Shown: piece after piece, positions 4,714-52,076 of the stretch
How positions within the stretch are numbered: position 1 is the first letter of the stretch
Layout: each line of letters starts with the position of its first letter
Assembly: GCA_002269645.1 (NCBI GenBank)
Contig: NIVC01000245.1
Location: forward strand, 558,001-622,000
Direction of reading: 5' to 3'
Origin: Macrostomum lignano
Taxonomy: Eukaryota
DNA length: 64,000 nt
Notes under the pieces: model-generated
The model's input: the letters and a program-made list of their open reading frames with translations, nothing else
What the model was told of the DNA's origin: nothing
The model's database searches: none
Translations under genes and position numbers: made by a program

Positions 4714-5234
4714 TCAATCGGCGATTATTTCCACAACATCGTCAGATTGTTCAACCATCAGGCGTTGCTGCTGGTTCTGTCGCTTTTGCAAGGACACTCG
4801 GCCGTGATTAGCCAAGATGGCGCTAGCAGCGGCTTCGCTAGGGTGATATTTCATGTGCAGCTTCAGGCTGAGCCGGTGGGTGAAGCTCTTGCCGCAGATG
4901 GGGCAGCAGTGGGGCCGCTCCCCGGTGTGCAGGCGCATGTGATCGTCCAGCGTGTTGGCCTGGCGGAAGCGCTGGCCGCACAGGTCGCACTTGTGCGGCT
5001 TGTCGCCCGTGTGGGTCAGCAGGTGGTGGTTCAGGTGGGCCAGCTGGCGGAAGGCGCGGCCGCACAGTTCGCAGTCGAATGGCTTCTCGTCACGGTGTAT
5101 CCGCATGTGCACCTGGGACAGATGGGTTTGGTGTGAGGGTTGATGGGCAAGTTGATGAATAGGTACGCTCGTAAAAAGATATATAAATAGATAGACAGAT
5201 AGATAGATGGATTGATGAACTGATAAATAGATAG

Positions 5235-5265
<31 letters not shown>

Positions 5266-5299
5266 GATGGATAGATATATAGATGGATAGATAGATAGG

Positions 5300-5381
<82 letters not shown>

Positions 5382-5395
5382 TGGATAGATAGATG

Positions 5396-5431
<36 letters not shown>

Positions 5432-5433
5432 TG

Positions 5434-5524
<91 letters not shown>

Positions 5525-5568
5525 GGATAGATAGATAGATAGATAGATAAAATAGATAGATAGATAGC

Positions 5569-5647
<79 letters not shown>

Positions 5648-6589
5648 AATAGATAGATAGATAGATAAATAAAAAAAAGATAGATACAGACAGATAGATA
5701 CATAGCTAAGTTTATTGAAATTAAAACTCATTAAGCTCCAGACAGTGGAATGTACCTTCAGGTAGCCTTGATTAGCGTAGGCCTTGCCGCACACGGAGCA
5801 TCTGTACTTTTTATCCGAATGATGAATCGGCACGTGACGCTTCAAGCTGGTCAGGGTGGCGAAGCACTTGCCGCACTGCTCGCACTCGTGCCTCTTCTCG
5901 CCCGTGTGCGTCTCCAAGTGGTTGCGAAGGTGAGCGAACAGGTGGAACCTGCGCTGGCAGATGTAGCAAGAGAAGCGCTTCTCCTGATCCACGCTCAGCA
6001 GCCGAGCCTTGATCGCAGCAACGGACACGTGTTGCGGATAATCGAACTGCTGTTGTAATGCCTTCTGCTGACGTCCGTTTTGCAACACCTGAGACGACAT
6101 CTGCTTCTGCTGTTCCATCGGCTGTCCGTTGTCGTGGGCAGCTCGATAAACCGACTGACTATTACTACCTGCATTACCGAAATCTCCGCCGTGTTTATCG
6201 GACAGGTAATTAGCTAATCTGCTAATTGTCGAGTTCAGAGTCGGAGCCATTATAGCAGCAGTCGGAGAAGATTCAATTTCAACAACCGAAGCTACGGAAT
6301 CTGCAAAATCTGGTTGCTGAGCACGACTGGACACGAAATAGGGATCATCTTCGTTCGAGAGCATGCCGGATTCGACTTTCATTTGCAGTTGCAGATAAGC
6401 CGGTTCAGGAGGAGCGAACTTGCTCTTCAATCTCGCTAGCAGCTGGTTTAGCTCTTCGTCTTGATGAAGCTGAGCCCGCTCGTCTGGATTCGATGGAGCC
6501 GAAGGCTGGTACTGATAATGAAGGTCATCGAGCACCCACTCCAGGGAAGCTTTAACTGGCTTATTGACTGACTTTCGGTTGCCGCTCAT
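4714..6589 (-). CDS. C2H2 zinc-finger protein, 6 fingers; exons 6589-5756 and 5112-4714
   Basis: Six C-x2-C-x12-H-x3-H fingers with HTGEK/HTGDKP/HTGERP linkers. Donor AAG|GTACA at 5756/5755 and acceptor CCCAG|GTG at 5113/5112 join YLK|VHMRIH, completing finger 3. An additional upstream exon cannot be excluded. Confidence 0.9.
5186..5700. repeat. (GATA)n microsatellite in the zinc-finger gene intron
   Basis: About 500 bp of near-perfect GATA units; explains the YLSI-repeat ORF translations. Confidence 0.97.
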
Positions 6590-30525: not shown

Positions 30526-33940
<3,415 letters not shown>

Positions 33941-41396: not shown

Positions 41397-42002
41397 TATG
41401 GCAGAGCAGCTCAGGGGCTAAAGCGTCTGACTAACGCGCCAGATTATTGTGGGGCTTGTGTACAAAAGTTGGCCTACCTAGTGCTAATGCAATTGTACGT
41501 ACAGAGTGCGTATATGGCTGACGATGTCAAAGTCAAATGATTTACAGCAGCACATTTTGTAAGCTAATCTCTAAAACCTCACTATCAAACTGTTCCACCA
41601 CCTTTGATAACCATTCTCGTTTTTTATTTGGATCACATACTACACTTTTAGAATTCGCTCTACACGTAATTGTGCATACCCTGATATGGCGCCGCCATTC
41701 TGTACATGGACACATGTGGTAATGTAGCGCTAAGAGAGATAGAAATGAGAGGGCAAGAGGGGCGGTTTTGAGGGCACTCCCTTGCTGTACATCCATCTGG
41801 CAACGTGTGTGTCTGTCCGTGCCAGACCCTATCCGACCCCTCCCCTCCACTGTTATCCAGGTACGCAGGTGAATTGAATATATTGCTTGCTGCATAAATA
41901 GTCTAGCTAGCAAGTAGCCGGCGTACTCCAATCTAAAGCAAACGCAACAGCAGCGCGGTTAAACGCAAAATAAAGTAAAACGACAAGAAATCAATCGAAA
42001 AA

Positions 42003-45000
42003 ATGTCTTGCGGTAAGAGTCCATTCATTTAGCTGTTCTTGACTTGACTTGACTTATGCTCTACCAGTCCTTTTAGCGAAGCGAAAGTACTTTTATACTG
42101 TTTAAGGTTGCCGCTTTTATTCTTTTGACATGTAAGCTCGACCCTGCTTGTAAAATTTTCCAAAGGCATTTTGAAATGAAAATGAAAAGCAATGCACCTG
42201 ATGCTTTCATTTGTTGCTGATGATTAAACGTGAAAAAATATCTAAATTTTTGAAAGACTAGGACAACTAGTTATCGATAAGCATAACTACTCATGCATCA
42301 AACTATACGAAAAATTGACGAACTCTCCCCCTCTCAGAAAAATTTGTCGAATTCGGCAAAAGCGTTCTGGCTAGCGACTTTCCCCACGTGGCCTCAACCG
42401 GCGTGATCATGCTCAACTCCGGCTCTTTTGGTCTGTCACCGAAGTCCGTTATTGACAAGAAAATCGAGTAAGTAATTGCGTTTTCTGACAAATGATTGGG
42501 GACCAACAGATGTTGAAGCTGTGAAGTAATGAAATGCATTACCGAGATAAGCTCGTAGGAAATTATTTTATTTCCGGACTTCTGAACTTTTAAAATGTGT
42601 TAATCACAAGTCCATTGACATTGCTCGTGAAAATACTTCTTAACAACTGAAGACCAGCAAAAAGCAAAGCTACAGCAAAACTATCAGATATAGCTTCTTT
42701 TGTGTGTCGCATCTCTTTTAACTTTTTTTATCATTATCGTTCATAGATTTTCTGTAGAGTAAAATCCCATTTTATGCAATAGATCTACGTGAGATGAAAA
42801 AATCTGCTATACAACCCGGAGTATTATTTATTCAGCGTCTTCAATAATACGCTTTTGGGAAAATTAAAACATATATAACTTATGATTTTAAATGTCATTG
42901 GAGCCATTCAATTATCAAGTTGCTCATAAAGTAGCCCGATGGTTCCATAGTACCCCAGGTATCCCTGCATAGCAACATTATTTGGGGCTGGTGCAAGCCC
43001 AGTGTTGCCGTGTTGCGTGCGATTTACACCAATAAAGGCCAACCCTAAAGGCACGGAGAGTGTACATTCCTGTAGATTAGAAAGTCATGGCCGGTGTGCG
43101 TCGCCACCAGGCGAAGGGGATGGGGGACACGACCCGGTAAAAGCTATGCTTTGTCTCCTCGGCCCCACCTTGTGACCCGGTAATTCAATCATTTAGCTTC
43201 AGGGCACCACAATGAAGGCGCCAAAATGATATTCGATGGCGACGACCCTGCCGCTGTACACCCTTTTTGAGTGTCTTGGTTTGCGGCAGCGCCAAATGCC
43301 CCCCCCCCCGATTGTGAACTAAGGACAAGTGGTCCCTGTATGAGATCTGTCTGTCGATCGTGCCATCATTTTTATCTACCAAAACAGATGCATCCAAGAT
43401 TTCGAAAGCTACGGAGACAACTATGTCCGACAAAGTCTGCTTCGTCAAACTGAGGACAGCATAGAGGCGGTGGCGAAACTGCTGGATGTCCGTCCCGATC
43501 AGTGCGTCATAGTGGACAATGTGACTACCGGCATCTCCAACCTGCTGGACACAATCGTGCGCCCGGGTGACACCATTCTGGTCAACTCGTGGACGTACGG
43601 CTCGGTGAAAATGGCTGCCAGCCTATCTAGCGAAGTAATGACAAACCGAAATAGCGATGAAACAGACGTCAAGCCGAGTTCAGTCCAGGTTGTTGAGCTA
43701 GACATTGAGCTGCCGATCAAATCCGAGGAAGACATTATCGAACAAGTTAGGAAAACTTTGGAGCAGCGATCCGACATTCGAATTGCTATTTTAGGTTAGT
43801 TTTCTGGGCCTGATGTCTGTTGTGTCACAATATATTATTAACCCTTCAATGTCTTCTTGCTCAATCTGCTTCGATTCACATGGCCTGGGGGCTGGGGCCT
43901 TAACGATCCGTTTTTAAAACAAGCTGAGCAAATTGGAAGTAAATTTCGGCGGAGCAGAAAATCGATTTCCTGGGATGAAAATAATTACTGACACATATGA
44001 CACAAGGACACAGGTATTTTTATTAAACTATATGGCTGCCTCACTCCATCAGTAATTTTATTCTAGTAATACCAGGTAACATGGTACATCCATCCCATGT
44101 ACAAATTTCATCACGTGGCTGCTTTCCCACCATTAACTATCCACTCCTGCTCATCTTTGAATTAGCCTAAATCGCACTTCTCAAACATCTCAAACATCGG
44201 CAGATCACATCACCAGCTCCACAGCCTGCCTGATGCCGGTGCAGCAGCTAACGAAGCTGTGCCGCAGTCGCGGCGTTCTAGTCGTCATCGACGGCGCTCA
44301 CGCAATTGGCCAAGTTCCCGAGCTCGATATCGAATCGATTGGAGCCGATTTCTACGTTGGCAATCTGCACAAGTGGTGCTTCGCACCGAAATCTGCTGCC
44401 CTGCTGTGGGCCAGAGCGGATCGAATTGACAGCCTGCGACCGTCCGTGGTGTCCTGGCTGGTGCGTGATCATTTGGCGTCGATGCGCTTTGCTTTTTTGG
44501 GCACCCGTGACACCAGCAGCGTCTGCGCGGTTAGCGAGGCTGTCAGATTTGTGAAGCAGAGCTGCGGCGGACTGGTGAGAACACTGGCAGTGGGCTTGAG
44601 ATGGATTATACAAGGTAACCTTGCGTGTTGTAACCAGAAACTACCAGGCCTTAGAGGCAGGCACCTCGGAATAGGTACCTCCTTGGCGTTGAGATGTGTA
44701 GGCATGCACTTCCCCTGAAAAAGCTATAAATAGCATTATGTTCGAACTTGTTGTGTAACAACGCTAATACGAGAAAAAAAGAATTTAGTCTAACGAAGAA
44801 GGTGCACAGAGAGATATAATTTTTGCTATAAAGTGAAACAATCAATGGGGAACAAATATGGTTGAAACCTAGATCAATCAACCACCACCAAACAATAGAT
44901 GATAAATTTTATAATTACATTTCTCATTATAAAATGTTAGAAACGAATTTGAGAAGTCATGAAAAAAGTAAAAATAACTTAAGATTGAATCTCTAGCGGA

Positions 45001-48000
45001 ATCAGCGCCTGGACTGGCCGTCTCACCCGCTTCCAGCGTCGGGAACTCCCAGCTCAAGCAATGTGAAGAAGAACCTCAGCATCACAGCCTGGACGCACTG
45101 AAATTTTACATGTCGCAATTTAGCTTAGACTTGTTTATTATATCTTTGTTCGGGTGCCATATCCACGTAGAGTACAGGATTATAACTCACGTCGCATGAA
45201 GGTAAAAAATAAACAATATATAACTCATATGACATAGTAGGCTTTTAGCATAAGCCGACTCATTCTACGACAACTGCTCCAAAATCAAGGTGACAATCGG
45301 CAGTCATGAGCACGTGAAGATAAATGCACAGTTTGACTCCATATTATGGCCGTAAATTGCACTACAGAGGCCTGCCTTGTCAAGTAATCCCAATTTCCGT
45401 TCAAAAACTCTAAATCACTGCGACCGCGCGCGAAATAGAACCCATTGAACCCAGACAAGCAAGGCGCCAGACTCAAATACTCTCATTCAATTTGATGGGG
45501 TAGATTCGTGACAGTAAGAGAATTTCAATATTCACGACGGAGTATTGTTTTCATGTATCGCGAATTCTCTGTGTAAGGACTTTATTGAGTTTTATTGGTG
45601 TTATTCTAATAATCGAAACTCTTATTAGCTAATTGATTTCAAGACAAAAATGAGTGTCTGATATCCAACGGGACCTAGTATAGTACAATAGTATTTCCAA
45701 GACTGCGCGTTGCATGCAACACAGCCTTCGGGGCTTTCCTGACAACTTTTAATCCTGCATCATGCGTCTAGCGCGTGATTGAACATTAGTCAGTTGTATG
45801 CCTGCAGGTAATAGCATGCTTTCTACAGCTCCACCTGACGCAAAAAGAAGCCATCATCACGAAAATTGATTATTTGATTTAATAAGTGGTTCGCCATTTT
45901 GCTCACACACGAGGCCTGCCTTCTTCAAACAATAGCGGCCATAGTAGCAATTCAGTATCTACGAAATGTCTACTTTTCCCTATAATTTATCGAAGCGAAT
46001 GAAAGGGTCTGATAATTATCAGCTTTGATTGTCCTACAGCAAATTATTTTTGTTATACCTGGGTTACTTTTACGTCAAAAAAGACGACGATATTTTGTAC
46101 TGGCTGGCAGACCTTAGTGAAATTGAATCGGCTCTCTGATTATTATTTTTGATTAGTACATCAAAATCTAGAATCTTTGCGTGTAATTAATTGCGATCAC
46201 ACAGCAGCCTCATGGCTCATTTTCTTTTGTTGAAAATTGGGACATCAAAAAGTTTTCTAAGTACGCTCTTTCCTGGGTAAAAACTCATTTTCACAAGTAT
46301 GTTAAGAACTCTTCAATTAAAAAAACATCTTTAAAAGAAATCCGAAGCCATATGCATGTGTCGGATACTAGCGCAGGATTGCCGGGATATTTTGCATCGC
46401 AAAGCTGTTGCACCGATTAAACTGCAAAGTTAATTGTGTGGCTTCAAATAATGAATGACTTCCGCAGCATTTACTGCCTTCAGTGCCGGAAGACCTAGGG
46501 CTTCCTGATTGCATTAAGTCGGAGCCTAACAGTTTTTTTTTCAGCTGCGAGACTTTAGAGCTGAAGTTGCTGGTACAATTTTTCTAATGAAAATCTGACG
46601 CGATTGAGTATTTCGTTTTCTAATGATTCTAATATTTCCTGTTTTTTCAAAGCTGCTCAGTCGATCAAGTATTCCACTTCTATTCATTTACTTCATTAGC
46701 TCGTACTGATATCATTCCCCACCTTGTCTCTATTCAATACTGCAACCACCTCACTCCTGCAATCATTTCCAACCCTGTCTCTATTCAATACTGCAACCAC
46801 CCCACTCCTGCAATCATTCCCAACCTTGTCTCTATTCAATACTGCAACCACCTCACTCCTGCAATCATTCCCAACCCTGTCTCTATTCAATACTGCAACC
46901 ACCTCACTCCTGCAATCATTCCCAACCCTGTCTCTATTCAATAGTGCAACCACCTCACTCCTGCAATCATTCCCAACCCTGTCTCTATTTAATAGTGCAA
47001 CCACCTCACTCCTGCAATCATTCCCAACCCTGTCTCTATTCAATAGGGCAACCACCTCACTCCTGCAATCATTCCCAACCCTGTCTCTATTCAATAGCGC
47101 AACCACCTCACTCCTGCAATCATTTCCAACCCTGTCTCTATTCAATACTGCAACCACCCCACTCCTGCAATCATTCCCAACCTTGTCTCTATTCAATACT
47201 GCAACCACCTCACTCCTGCAATCATTCCCAACCCTGTCTCTATTCAATACTGCAACCACCTCACTCCTGCAATCATTCCCAACCCTGTCTCTATTCAATA
47301 GTGCAACCACCTCACTCCTGCAATCATTCCCAACCCTGTCTCTATTTAATAGTGCAACCACCTCACTCCTGCAATCATTCCCAACCCTGTCTCTATTCAA
47401 TAGGGCAACCACCTCACTCCTGCAATCATTCCCAACCCTGTCTCTATTCAATAGCGCAACCACCTCACTCCTGCAATCATTCCCAACCCTGTCTCTATTC
47501 AATAGGGCAACCACCTCACTCCTGCAATCATTCCCAACCCTGTCTCTATTCAATAGCGCAACCACCTCACTCCTGCAATCATTCCCAACCCTGTCTCTAT
47601 TCAATAGCGCAACCACCTCACTCCTGCAATCATTCCCAACCCTGTCTATTCAATACTGCAACCACCTCACTCCTGCAATCATTCCCAACCCCGTCTCTCT
47701 ATTCACTAGTGCAACCACCTCACTCCTGCAATCATTCCTAACCCCGTCTCTCTATTCACTAGTGCAACCACCTCTCTCCTGCAGCTTGCTCCTCAAAACT
47801 CGCCAATTGCAGGCTCGCATTCAGGCCTACTGCAGTCGGCTGGCTGATGAGGCGTCCCAGCATCTCGCTACAGCGTGGAACTCGCACAAGCTTCCAATCC
47901 CAGCCAATATGGAGGCGCCATTCATGCGTCTGATTGCTCTGCCGAAGCATCTGCAGTGCCGTGAAATTCTAGATATGGTTAGTGTCCCGACTTATAATTT

Positions 48001-48702
48001 TCTAAATTCTTGAAAGGGAGTTTGAGTTGAATAGATATTTTTTTAAATGAATAGCATTTACTGTACCCTCTTATTCCCTGTGGATAAGGAGAATATGTTA
48101 TTTTTTCGTCAACAAAAGCTTTTTTAATAGAAAAACCGACTTTCAAGAGTCAGTGACTCCTCTTACTCCTCAAACTCAATGAAAAAATTCTTGACTGAAA
48201 TTCCATAGCTTTGAAGCTAAACGATGCAGCTAGCCTATTCAGGTTTGTTTGATCCGTTTCTGCTTCAGACAGAGCTTCTAGAAGCGTTTATTATTTAAGC
48301 CTACTACTATTGCCAGTAGTAGATGCTATATGTAGCTCCTAAGGATAAAGAGTGTAAAAAATTTCGATTTTTGTTATTTTCTGATATAGTAGCTGAATTG
48401 ACCCTTCAAGGTTGCAATCCCACAAAAGGACCAGGGCTGTAGAAGCTCTACACGCAGTCCGATCGGGTTTTACTTTTCTAGAAATTTACTTTTATTCGAC
48501 TTTGCAGACAAACGAGTACCGAATGATGAGTCCCATGTGGCACTTTCTACTCAATAAACTTAAAATGAATTTACTTCTGATGAACATTCAAGACACTCTA
48601 TACGTCCGCATCTCCTGCTCGATTATTGTTGATATGGACAATATTCGGAAGCTGGCTGACATCATCATGAAGCTGACGAAGGATGACTTTTTGAGTCCAT
48701 AG
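42003..48702 (+). CDS. PLP-dependent aminotransferase class V enzyme, Egt2 (hercynylcysteine sulfoxide lyase)/LCD/CefD-like, ~425 aa; exons 42003-42012, 42338-42467, 43388-43794, 44204-44574, 47813-47977, 48508-48702
   Basis: FG..LNSGSFG, VDNVTTGISNLL, TYGSV, LDHITS, IDGAH, GNLHKW (PLP lysine), GTRD and YVRIS motifs. All five junctions are GT-AG with consistent phases (1,2,1,0,0). Confidence 0.88.
46710..47785. repeat. 51 bp tandem repeat, ~21 copies, in intron 4 of the lyase gene
   Basis: GTCTCTATTC at 46726 and 46777 (period 51); 17 aa periodicity in three ORFs. Confidence 0.97.
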
Positions 48703-49464
48703 TCAGTCGAACTACAACCTTTAGCCTGCGCTTATACTTAGGACAAATCAGATAGAAAGAACTAAAAGTTAAGCCCTCATAATTACAATGCTGATGAACT
48801 TTCAAGTTTTAAATAATTATTAGATTTTTTGCAATATTGACACTTTTATTCCAGCTTAATATTTTTACAGACAGTGAAGTAATTTTTTTAGCAAAATAAA
48901 AATCTGTTGTCTGTAGCAATAACGTTCGCATCTACGAGCGTAAAGTTATGTTGCTCTATTTTTTCATTGATCAATTTATTCAATCAGGACAACGTCAAAA
49001 AGCAGTTCAAGAGGAAGAAGTGTACAGCTCCCATGCCTACTCATGATCGTGTATCAAGAGCATGTGCTTACGGGCAGATAATGACATGTGAGTAATGCCG
49101 TGAAAATAGTGTCACAAAACGGAAGGACAGATCATTAATAATCGAAAAATAGTAAATTTCAGTGATAATCTAAATCTTAAGAATTTATATATCAGAGTTT
49201 TGCGAGAGTCCTATTGTGGGTTCATAATTATAGAGTCTTGATCCGCTTTATACTGGATATTGAAGCATCATATCCTGAATGAAAATAAACCGGAATTGAG
49301 GCCCAAAATCGGATGGAACTAGACTAATAAAATCGGAACTGAAAAAAAACATTTAAACTTGGACTAAAAAAGGACCAGGTGGGTAATATTGTGATGAATC
49401 AAATAATACGAGCGTATATATGCATTTTTAAGCCGATTCAATGTTTCGAAGAACGAAAGAATGT

Positions 49465-52076
49465 TTAATAATAGTCGTAAAGGGCAAATCCACTAATGCT
49501 GCGATTTTCGCTGTTGCATCGTTCACCCCTGCTCGGGTACTTGCCGGTGTTGCTTCCAGTGCAATCCGTGAGATAGGTGACAGCGCCACTTGACGAAGAG
49601 GTGCACGTAGAGCAATCGGAAACTTTTTTACTTGCTCCAAGTCGAGGTGCGTAACCTCTACCGTCAGGTTGCTTTTCATTTTTTCGTTTTCTTCTGGCTC
49701 GAACTCGAAGCAGCAGTTCATATGCAGCTTCAATCACTTCGAAAAGAATCATTACGGACATTCCTAAGTACAAGCCGAGAATACCGCCCGTGTCGCTTAC
49801 GAAATTGCCAAACTTGTATGCCCATGTGCGCACAATGCGTCTCAGACTGCCCCGGCTGACGCTAAAATGTAGTCGGACAAATGCCTCATCCAGATAGTCA
49901 TTGAGAACGCGTTTGTCTTCACTGGAGTTCCACTGGGTCCTGTTAGCCAATTCGAATAGAAATTCCAGACCGGGTTCCTTTGAAAGGCTGCTGCATTCGC
50001 CTTTTAGGCTCTGAACAAATCGTGCGGCAGCCTGCCGACCGGGAAATCTGGCGCTGGAAATGTCCACTTTGTATCTCATCTGAAAAAATGAGCCACGTTT
50101 AATAACACTTAAATGCTACCTTCTGAATTGTTTAAGATGACTTTTTAATTTAATATGCTTATGACTGTTTAAAAAGAATAAATTTTACCCGTTCAATCAC
50201 AACTCGGCTTTCAAGGAGGCTTCTGGCAAACTTTTATTTCAAGTCAAAGCGTGAATGTATCTATGTACTCTTTATTTCCCAAAGCTTAGTTACAGCTAAA
50301 AAGCTTCAAAGACAAAAACTCACTCACCTCTCCGCAAGCACTTTTACTTGCACAATTTTGCACAACTTTCTTGCCAATATGAAGACTTAGCACCGGACCT
50401 TTCCTATAGAGCAATTTGATAAGCTCTTCTACTGCTTCAGGAGGCAATCCGGTGAGATTGTAGGCGTACTCCAATTCGTTAGGCAGTTGGCTCAGGCTAC
50501 GATTGAACAGCTCCGGTAGTTTGGAACTCTGGCGCTCCCACTCGGACACAATGCAGGCAAAGTAGCTGTACTGGTAGGTGCGCAGTCCGCCGGTGTACGG
50601 GTCACGAAAACGAGGCAGCGTCAGCTCAGGAGAGTCCTCGTTAACACACTCGTTAGAAAATTCCTCATGATCGCGATAGTCCTCTTCGGCGTACAAACTC
50701 ACCTGGTGGTAAGCGCCTGGCGACAGAAGAAAGTTGGCGACAAATTGGCTGGGGTAGTGGCCGCGAGGTGCGAGAAATACCCGAAGACCCGGACTGATGT
50801 AGGCTGGCGATTCAGACAGTGACCTGATGAATGAATGAGGGTTGAACAATTTCTTTTCAATGAAAATCAGAATTAGATTTCAATCTCATATATTTACACT
50901 GTTAGTTTATTGCGTCGAGGTGTTTTTTTTATTTTCATCCTTACTCAAATAAAGAGTCACAATTTAAATGAATAAAATTGATCGCTTACTGTTTCTTATA
51001 CAATCTACTTCATACTAAGGCCCATATAGCCAACTTAAACCTATAAACAGCAGCTGTACCGAATGGAGTACTATATTTTATGGTCATTCACATTTCTTAC
51101 CAGTCCCATAGTTGCATAGACTCGCTGCCGTCAGGCAAGAAAAGCTTCCGCACTCGCTCCTTACTGTTCCAAGTTGACTTCAATCGTTCATTAGCTGGAT
51201 CAAGAAACATCAGCAGTTCTACCCCTGTGTTTGAATCCGAACTGGTGCACTGAAGAGCATCCGCTGCCTCTGGGGACAGTGTGAGCCGGAAACAGGACGG
51301 ATGCACGTGATGGTAGAACGGCGTCACTTGAACGCTTTCGCGAGCGTCGCCAACAACGGGTACTGTGCTACGAAACAAAGCATAGATTATACTTTGCCTT
51401 TGTTGCGCTCCAATCCAATCGGCCCATAGACGATAGGGCAGAGAGTGAATCGCATAGTGAGAGGCCCAGTGGGGAATGTACTTGCGCTGCTTCGGATTGG
51501 TGACGACGCGGCCAAGAATAGGTTGGACCATTTGCAAGCTTGCATCTAGGTGCCTGTTGATTTCCCTGACCTGTCAGATGGTTGGATAAGGAAAAGAGTC
51601 ATTTGCATGCATAAATCTACAGGTAAAAGACGTTGGAAGAGAGTGCTTTACAACTGAGGGATTTCCCTATAGCCGTGAAAAACGATGGAAATGATTCTGC
51701 TCTCAAAGTTTCTTACCTGACTGTCATTAAGCAACTTGTGAAGCGAACCGGACACTGGATGGTTGTTGCAGAGGTACACGTCGGGAAACTCGAACTCGCC
51801 AGTCTGGTCAAAGTGTGTTGCTATTTCTCCAGCCCATAGTCGATTAAAAATATTGGTCAAGTTCAATAAAAATGCGCATACGCAAAGGGCACATACTGCT
51901 ACCCACATCAGTCTGATCCAGGTGTGCTTGGCTTGCACGATTCTGGCAAGGCCGTGAGCGTAGGAACGTCTCATTGCTGCCTTCATCAGAGGCAGAACTT
52001 CGGAGCGAAACGACTGCTCACTGAGCTGCTCAACGCTCTGCTGATTTTGCAGAATTTTTTCTTCTTTTTTCTCCAT
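49465..52076 (-). CDS. DEG/ENaC (ASIC/FaNaC/pickpocket-family) channel subunit, 646 aa; exons 52076-51717, 51570-51101, 50823-50328, 50079-49465
   Basis: Pre-TM1 HG motif (SYAHGLARI), TM1, FPDVYLCNNHP, GLRVFL, C..E.RY...ISSARFP, TM2 SDTGGILGLYLGMSVMILFE. Exons sum to 1941 nt with consistent phases (0,2,0). Confidence 0.92.

Follow-up and report, generated by a model that had tools for sequence, protein, structure and literature searches.

In a 64-kb stretch of DNA from the flatworm Macrostomum lignano (the window, in whose positions all coordinates are given), we identified an intact nuclear gene at 42003-48702 (+) that encodes a fold-type I, class V pyridoxal 5'-phosphate (PLP)-dependent enzyme of the Egt2/LolT/L-cysteine desulfhydrase (LCD) family—an assignment that we consider virtually certain. 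The most likely reaction of the encoded protein is predicted to be PLP-dependent C-S β-lyase chemistry, which we regard as probable, and the most attractive single hypothesis for its physiological role is that of a candidate ovothiol sulfoxide lyase. This hypothesis was strengthened but not proven by our analysis, and we put its probability at about one in three. Ovothiols serve as major redox buffers in the eggs and embryos of marine invertebrates and have been explored as drugs; the animal ovothiol pathway is known only through the sulfoxide synthase OvoA, and a single conserved, easily cloned candidate for the lyase step, with fitting chemistry and phyletic spread, makes this gap testable.

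The gene was rebuilt by reading positions 41500-49300 and joining the reading frames, which yielded six exons and a coding sequence of 1278 nt for 425 amino acids plus a TAG stop codon. All five introns are of the GT-AG type, and they are located after residues 3 (phase 1), 46 (phase 2), 182 (phase 1), 306 (phase 0) and 361 (phase 0). Exon 1 (42003..42012, +) consists of the ATG and 7 further nucleotides, encoding M-S-C and the first base of codon 4, with the donor GT at 42013. The junctions of introns 2-5 were confirmed with an independent exact-match exon mapper; exon 1, with its 10 nt, falls below the size range of the mapper, and its assignment is based on frame assembly and on the public N-terminus, as the sequence MSCEKF is also found in the public M. 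lignano models BOX15_Mlig016158g3 and A0A1I8JJ.. (UniProt). Moreover, an equivalent mini-exon is present in an M. lignano paralogue (BOX15_Mlig007261g2), the product of which is 50% identical to the window protein. Exon 2 (42338..42467, +) covers residues 4-46 and part of codon 47, and holds the LNSGSFG block (N30, G32 and G35), while exon 3 (43388..43794, +; residues 47-182) contains N91/T93 (in NVTTG), Tyr117 (codon 43596-43598) and an insertion of 11 residues at 133-143. Exon 4 (44204..44574, +; residues 183-306) carries DHITS, Asp212 (44290-44292), His215, the PLP lysine Lys239 (44371-44373) and GTRD, exon 5 (47813..47977, +) encodes residues 307-361, and exon 6 (48508..48702, +) residues 362-425 and the TAG stop codon, including the invariant Arg395 (48607-48609) in YVRIS. 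A first-pass annotation of this DNA had described a complete class V enzyme of ~425 amino acids; its start and stop coordinates, as well as the positions of its motifs—NSGS at 30-33, TYGS at 116-119, DGAH at 212-215 and GNLHKW at 235-240—all proved exact upon rebuilding. Inspection of the window protein by eye revealed no recognisable signal or transit peptide.

Several comparisons place the protein in the family named above, as had been proposed from the sequence. The Pfam model Aminotran_5 (PF00266) matched residues 38-326 with 59.7 bits against a cut-off of 21.5, and the window protein keeps the residues of all 11 columns that are invariant in an alignment of 65 family sequences (N91, P194, D212, A214, H215, G218, K239, W240, T283, P350 and R395). 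Three of these residues, K239, D212 and R395, are universal across the animal, plant, bacterial and OvoA-fused groups; in this fold, they presumably act as the Schiff-base lysine, the partner of the pyridine nitrogen and the ligand of the α-carboxylate, respectively. A profile search of 1.84 billion representatives returned 24,123 relatives, 3,041 of them at E <= 1e-30, among which were bacterial proteins named 'isopenicillin-N epimerase' by JGI and the land-plant LCD family. When matched by sequence against solved structures, the protein was closest to LolT (8DL5/9AZA, 3e-28) and Egt2 (5UTS/5V12, 1e-22), followed by C-DES (1e-11), SufS (1e-8) and then PvdN. The fold was tested by proxy, on an AlphaFold model of BOX15_Mlig007261g2, the paralogue with 50% identity, built from a 75-sequence alignment, with a mean predicted local distance difference test (pLDDT) score of 94 and a predicted template modeling (pTM) score of 0.93. 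The top 50 Foldseek matches of this model were all class V enzymes, headed by LolT (8DL5/9AZA; E 2e-29, template modeling (TM) score 0.82-0.87) and Egt2 (1e-28, TM 0.84-0.86). A gap of about nine orders of magnitude separates LolT and Egt2 from SufS, PvdN and EgtE—SufS reaching 1.7e-20 with a TM score of 0.66-0.73, and SufS and EgtE together falling at ~1e-19 to 1e-20. The EgtE structures 8IRK and 8IRY rank well below Egt2 in both sequence and fold.

The cysteine desulfurases SufS, NifS and IscS share the Pfam family and the PLP-binding core of the window protein, which nevertheless lacks their catalytic cysteine loop. No Cys was found within residues 362-394, the site of the SufS/IscS persulfide loop, and the nearest one (C397) lies beyond Arg395. 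Additionally, the scores against the corresponding NCBIfam models are far under the cut-offs (56/475 for SufS, 43/607 for CsdA and 23/548 for IscS), and a desulfurase of the NifS/SufS type, which the first-pass annotation had already discounted, is thereby ruled out. These enzymes also carry a PLP-stacking histidine (EHxA/S) where the window protein has a tyrosine. Other curated models scored similarly, with values of 42/400 for EgtE (TIGR04343), 37.8/246.4 for kynureninase (TIGR01814) and 59/650 for PvdN; the latter was the best NCBIfam model, yet far under its cut-off, so that no curated equivalog was reached.

Among the characterized systems, Egt2 of Neurospora crassa (hercynylcysteine sulfoxide lyase; 5UTS, 5V12 and 5V1X) offers the closest parallel to a C-S lyase, with the same class V PLP fold, the TM scores of 0.84-0.86 to the paralogue model given above, and a sequence match (E 1e-22) that extends over residues 21-328. 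Both proteins share LNxGSFG, NxT, the catalytic Tyr, DGAx, the HKW lysine and GT(R/V)D, and neither has a persulfide cysteine. In the HMMER alignment, Lys239 pairs with the lysine of HKW and Tyr117 with Tyr134 of Egt2—the latter correspondence being established because 5V12, the Y134F variant of Egt2, shows Phe at the Tyr117 column. However, the two proteins are only ~21-25% identical, Egt2 is ~75 residues longer, and it has H where the window protein has S31, Q in the position of H215 and GTVD in place of GTRD. They would also differ in their substrates: Egt2 has Egt1 as its partner and acts on a trimethylated histidine linked at C2, whereas the conjugate of the animal candidate would be C5-linked.

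In the mechanism that we propose, Lys239 would hold PLP as an internal aldimine, with Asp212 pairing with the pyridine nitrogen and Arg395 binding the α-carboxylate of the substrate. An external aldimine would form with the cysteine part of an S-substituted cysteine, the α-proton would be removed and the sulfur substituent eliminated—possibly assisted by Tyr117, as Tyr134 is thought to do in Egt2—to give aminoacrylate (which would yield pyruvate and ammonia) and a sulfur-containing leaving group. The physiological job of the enzyme would be the 'OvoB' step, in which the product of OvoA, S-(5-histidyl)-cysteine sulfoxide, is cleaved via a sulfenic acid to yield 5-thiohistidine, and in animals this step would be carried out by an Egt2-type enzyme and not by a relative of bacterial OvoB. 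The reaction proposed here, PLP-dependent cleavage of 5-histidylcysteine sulfoxide, is that of the bacterial OvoB of Erwinia tasmaniensis (EtOvoB), which looks like a class I/II aminotransferase-type enzyme judging from the residue pattern Y125, N176, D204, H207 and K240 in PMC8433421. If the ovothiol hypothesis holds, the animal enzyme would be a non-orthologous replacement of bacterial OvoB.

The literature leaves room for such an enzyme. Using EtOvoA and EtOvoB as queries, Brancaccio et al. (2021; PMC8433421) found no metazoan OvoB-like sequence except in Hydrozoa, where it is fused to OvoA, and Roncalli et al. (PMC8623360) likewise reported no OvoB-like sequence in metazoans outside Hydrozoa; later ovothiol papers simply cite bacterial OvoB. 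In the open literature searched, we found no link of ovothiol to Egt2-like or desulfhydrase-like animal genes, which bears out the earlier remark that the lyase partner of OvoA in animals is poorly defined. More broadly, we tentatively propose that the stand-alone Egt2/LCD-like enzyme distributed from sponges to tunicates could be the missing metazoan ovothiol sulfoxide lyase, non-orthologous to bacterial OvoB, and that in the fused domain of hydrozoans the superfamily could have been recruited independently to this step a second time; we rate this combined proposal somewhat lower than the role of the window gene itself. If true, animals would use an Egt2-type lyase, like ergothioneine-making fungi, and bacteria and animals would have arrived at unrelated PLP enzymes for one and the same step; otherwise, the family would still be an uncharacterised sulfur-metabolising enzyme.

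The hydrozoan fusion bears directly on this proposal. Transcript GFUD01011893, listed as a 'copepod OvoA' in the supplement of PMC8623360, encodes a product of 1464 amino acids with an N-terminal Aminotran_5 domain, an FGE-sulfatase domain and an S-adenosylmethionine (SAM) methyltransferase domain, and it shows full-length identity of 55-58% to proteins encoded in the Hydractinia and Hydra genomes, in which the order is Aminotran_5, DinB_2, FGE-sulfatase and methyltransferase. This architecture is the known hydrozoan fusion. The best solved match to a profile of the fused lyase domain was Egt2 (1.6e-16, versus 1.7e-7 for SufS), and hhalign aligned this domain with the animal stand-alone family over 354 columns (99.9% probability, E 1.8e-34, 17% identity), with the Tyr, DG, HKW and R-I-S motifs in common. 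The fused domain is therefore an Egt2-like member of class V, so that the one lyase joined to OvoA in an animal protein comes from the superfamily of the window gene, and this 'OvoB-like' domain looks unrelated to bacterial OvoB. The two types are nonetheless distinct: the hydrozoan domain sits in one polypeptide with DinB, FGE-sulfatase and methyltransferase domains, has DGTQ and STHKW where the window protein reads DGAH and NLHKW, and contains a Cys-rich insertion ahead of the C-terminal Arg.

A word-indexed search with the full-length fusion OvoA as the query retrieved 22 close hydrozoan-type relatives and no canonical metazoan OvoA. We also observed that calanoid 'copepod OvoA' transcripts share the ~1460-residue fusion layout, the lyase domain of which goes unmentioned in PMC8623360. 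Within File S3 of the same study, the Tigriopus californicus 'OvoA' (TRY67137) is a protein of 382 amino acids with an FGE-sulfatase domain only (291 bits) and no DinB or methyltransferase domain; on this basis, it looks like SUMF1 and not OvoA. Several other entries of that file (decapod, amphipod and other copepod) look FGE-only by eye, and in Gammarus pulex GHCO01130275, TAA and TAG codons can be seen by eye within the reading frame, so that this transcript might come from a contaminant that uses the ciliate code.

To survey the distribution of the family, we relied on name look-ups of 30 of the 150 top representatives together with named hits, all from word-indexed searches. Named stand-alone members were found in Porifera (Sycon), Anthozoa (Nematostella), Annelida (Owenia), Brachiopoda (Lingula), Mollusca (many species), Platyhelminthes (M. 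lignano), Echinodermata (all five classes), Hemichordata (Ptychodera), Cephalochordata (Branchiostoma) and Tunicata (three species), and no vertebrate, arthropod or nematode member occurred in any named list. According to PMC4768315, OvoA is present in Porifera, Placozoa, Anthozoa, Annelida, Mollusca, Echinodermata, Hemichordata, Cephalochordata and Urochordata, and was lost in nematodes, arthropods and bony vertebrates. The distribution of the family mirrors that reported for OvoA, a resemblance that is suggestive only. Eight species have both a family member and an OvoA on record (Table S2 of PMC8623360): Mizuhopecten yessoensis, Mytilus galloprovincialis, Aplysia californica, Nematostella vectensis, S. 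purpuratus, Apostichopus japonicus, Acanthaster planci and Sycon ciliatum. Co-occurrence with OvoA is visible at the level of phyla and in these eight species; the cartilaginous fishes, which have OvoA on record (PMC8623360), did not turn up among the named family members. Bdelloid rotifers have an OvoA gained by horizontal transfer.

Land and freshwater snails carry the family, and several molluscs, e.g., Biomphalaria and Bulinus, have two or more paralogues. A transcript-supported protein of Argopecten irradians (806 amino acids) contains two tandem copies of the Egt2-like domain, and a protein of Atractiella rhizophila (1041 amino acids) combines a GGACT (gamma-glutamyl cyclotransferase) domain with two such copies.

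A number of observations weigh against an ovothiol role or limit the case for it. Many animal genes have been lost in ecdysozoans as well as in vertebrates, and the matching distribution is for this reason no more than suggestive. Furthermore, as names were obtained for just 30 of the 150 representatives and word-indexed searches can miss relatives, the absence of the family from vertebrates and arthropods is likely but not proven. The tyrosine of TYGS is no pointer to sulfoxide substrates, because the catalytic Tyr is universal across the whole family (LCD-like and isopenicillin-N-epimerase-like), in the animal, plant, bacterial and fused groups alike, and does not discriminate between substrates. 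Likewise, no positions of note were found to be exclusive to the animal and OvoA-fused members when compared with plant and bacterial ones, position 78 alone qualifying. The plant LCD family is treated as EGT2 homologues in PMC13358676 (2026), where it is described from all plants, even those angiosperms in which EGT1 is missing and ergothioneine is not produced; a large family kept by EGT1-less angiosperms and by many bacteria must have jobs unrelated to thiohistidines. In addition, the fused hydrozoan domain forms a separate clade in a neighbor-joining tree without support values and is 17-21% identical to the stand-alone family—as a separate and distant clade, it ties the wider Egt2-like group to OvoA and not the window subfamily in particular. 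Of the top 150 stand-alone representatives, the 10 longest were scanned, and none showed a fusion to OvoA, EgtB or a methyltransferase, these proteins being mostly tandem doublets along with one fungal GGACT fusion. A lack of OvoA in Platyhelminthes is mentioned in PMC8433421, in the context of obligate parasites; by tblastn, the 64-kb window itself contains no OvoA. Finally, the M. lignano sequences are divergent. Pro56, otherwise universal, is replaced by Gly in the window protein and by Ala in the paralogue, Asn402 is replaced by Val in both, and the pair forms a long branch near the eukaryote/animal cluster in the neighbor-joining tree—which, having no bootstrap values, was used solely for this placement.

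Close behind the ovothiol role stands the possibility that the protein is an L-cysteine or L-cystine desulfhydrase, which would catalyze β-elimination to pyruvate, ammonia and H2S or cysteine persulfide and serve sulfide signalling or sulfur catabolism, independently of thiohistidines. We consider this alternative only slightly less likely than the ovothiol role. The plant LCD family (PTHR43092) is a close relative: homology is full-length at 26-33% identity, with a profile E value of ~1e-82 to the animal family, and all universal residues are shared, including the catalytic Tyr and the PLP residues, which recur in bacterial members as well. The Synechocystis cystine lyase C-DES also appears among the solved matches (1e-11), and the retention of the family in angiosperms without EGT1 (PMC13358676) implies that LCD need not work with a sulfoxide synthase. 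Animal orthologues are named 'L-cysteine desulfhydrase-like' after plant LCD, the source of their NCBI names; these names were transferred by similarity, however, and many of the plant members are named 'chloroplastic' by NCBI. C-DES and SufS are, moreover, much more distant from the window protein than Egt2 and LolT, and a desulfhydrase function offers no reason why the family should track OvoA-bearing phyla or be missing from vertebrates, arthropods and nematodes.

A different PLP chemistry or substrate appears unlikely, be it that of a CefD-like epimerase, a LolT-like C-C bond former, a PvdN-type tailoring enzyme or a lyase of another cysteine S-conjugate or of selenocysteine. In its favor, the solved protein that ranks first in both the sequence (3e-28) and the fold (2e-29) comparison is LolT, a PLP-dependent Mannich cyclase of the loline pathway and not a lyase. 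LolT has the same motif set as the window protein, but it forms a C-C bond instead of cleaving a C-S bond, reads NAPSCG for NSGSFG and stems from a fungal alkaloid cluster. The 'isopenicillin-N epimerase' names of many bacterial relatives and the position of PvdN as the best NCBIfam model, although far under its cut-off, point in the same direction, and the family is chemically diverse, with no specificity marker in the sequence. On the other hand, LolT and CefD operate in specialised fungal or bacterial secondary-metabolite pathways, for which we know of no animal counterpart, and conservation as a single copy in ten animal phyla points to a role in general metabolism. The reading NSGS in place of the usual NHGS, previously regarded as a hint of altered specificity, turned out to be a weak signal at a variable position: most members have H as residue 31, the echinoderms and the M. 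lignano paralogue have N, and LolT and the fused domains have A.

The M. lignano genome is highly duplicated, and the gene could also be a diverging or decaying duplicate in which catalysis is reduced or lost, a scenario that we find improbable. It would account for the replacement of Pro56 and Asn402 in both paralogues, for the 11-residue insertion (NRNSDETDVKP, 133-143), which occurs only in the window protein, and for the long branch; these changes and the insertion fit the long branch of the flatworm sequences as such. The paralogue further reads GNLNKW where the window protein has GNLHKW. A near-identical copy of the locus is found in contig NIVC01000567.1 (535 kb; assembly GCA_002269645.1), with 98.5% identity to the window over 7.8 kb. 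This copy lacks 58 nt of the last exon (window 48526-48583), a deletion that explains the frameshifted C-terminal tail of the public protein BOX15_Mlig016158g3, in which the conserved Arg is lost and which is otherwise 99% identical to the window protein (E 6e-240). The deletion may be a true allele or homeologue difference, or an assembly error. Against decay, the frame of the window gene is intact over six exons with canonical splice sites, the 11 invariant family residues are all kept (Lys239, Asp212 and Arg395 included), and the paralogue model reaches a pLDDT of 94. The exons also diverge less than the introns between the two copies, with 6 mismatches in 1202 nt versus 62 in 3065 nt.

The gene is already present in public databases, though mis-modelled, and its orthologues bear similarity-based names such as 'hercynylcysteine sulfoxide lyase-like'. 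Both public protein models of the window gene are defective—BOX15_Mlig016158g3 on account of the frameshift, and the UniProt model A0A1I8JJ.. as it reads through into intron 4—and the rebuilt model regains the YVRIS block present in all relatives.

As to the origin of the gene, we compared its introns with those at the genomic loci of the M. lignano paralogue, Mizuhopecten (scallop), Styela (tunicate) and Acanthaster (starfish), placing them on the protein alignment. The paralogue has the same five introns as the window gene. All five genes compared have the intron at the exon 2/3 boundary (after residue 46, LNxGSFG...K/I, phase 2) as well as the phase 0 intron that follows GGL; the phase 1 intron directly ahead of DHITS occurs in the window gene, the paralogue, the scallop and Styela, but not in Acanthaster. 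Three more introns are common to scallop, tunicate and starfish and missing from the flatworm. With three of five introns at the same position and phase in scallop and tunicate, two of them also in starfish, the gene is an old, vertically inherited animal gene, and the pattern matches vertical descent with intron loss. The earlier argument that the introns speak against contamination was borne out and is now stronger, resting on positions and phases common to mollusc, tunicate and starfish. Although bacterial relatives are ~30-33% identical and nearly as close as animal ones, contamination or a recent acquisition by horizontal transfer, be it bacterial or fungal, is effectively refuted by these shared positions among the five spliceosomal introns, by the flanking animal genes and retroelement, and by the 98.5% identity over 7.8 kb to a 535-kb M. 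lignano contig, leaving it a practically negligible probability.

Further features of the locus and its surroundings are as follows. Intron 4 contains a noncoding tandem array (46711..47783, no strand assigned; Tandem Repeats Finder) of a 51-bp unit repeated 21 times with 95% matches, whose repeats create spurious open reading frames of 265-429 amino acids on both strands; the array spans ~1.7 kb in the NCBI copy (NIVC01000567.1) versus 1.07 kb in the window. The flanking content consists of animal genes and a long interspersed nuclear element (LINE). C2H2 zinc-finger open reading frames are located near the window start (4714-6589, -), and a LINE-type retrotransposon copy lies ~8 kb upstream of the lyase gene (30529-33852, +), with a reading frame of 1107 amino acids that includes endonuclease, reverse transcriptase and RNase H domains. 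Finally, the C-terminal exon of a DEG/ENaC (amiloride-sensitive channel) gene was found on the opposite strand (49465-50079, -), ~760 bp past the stop codon of the lyase gene.

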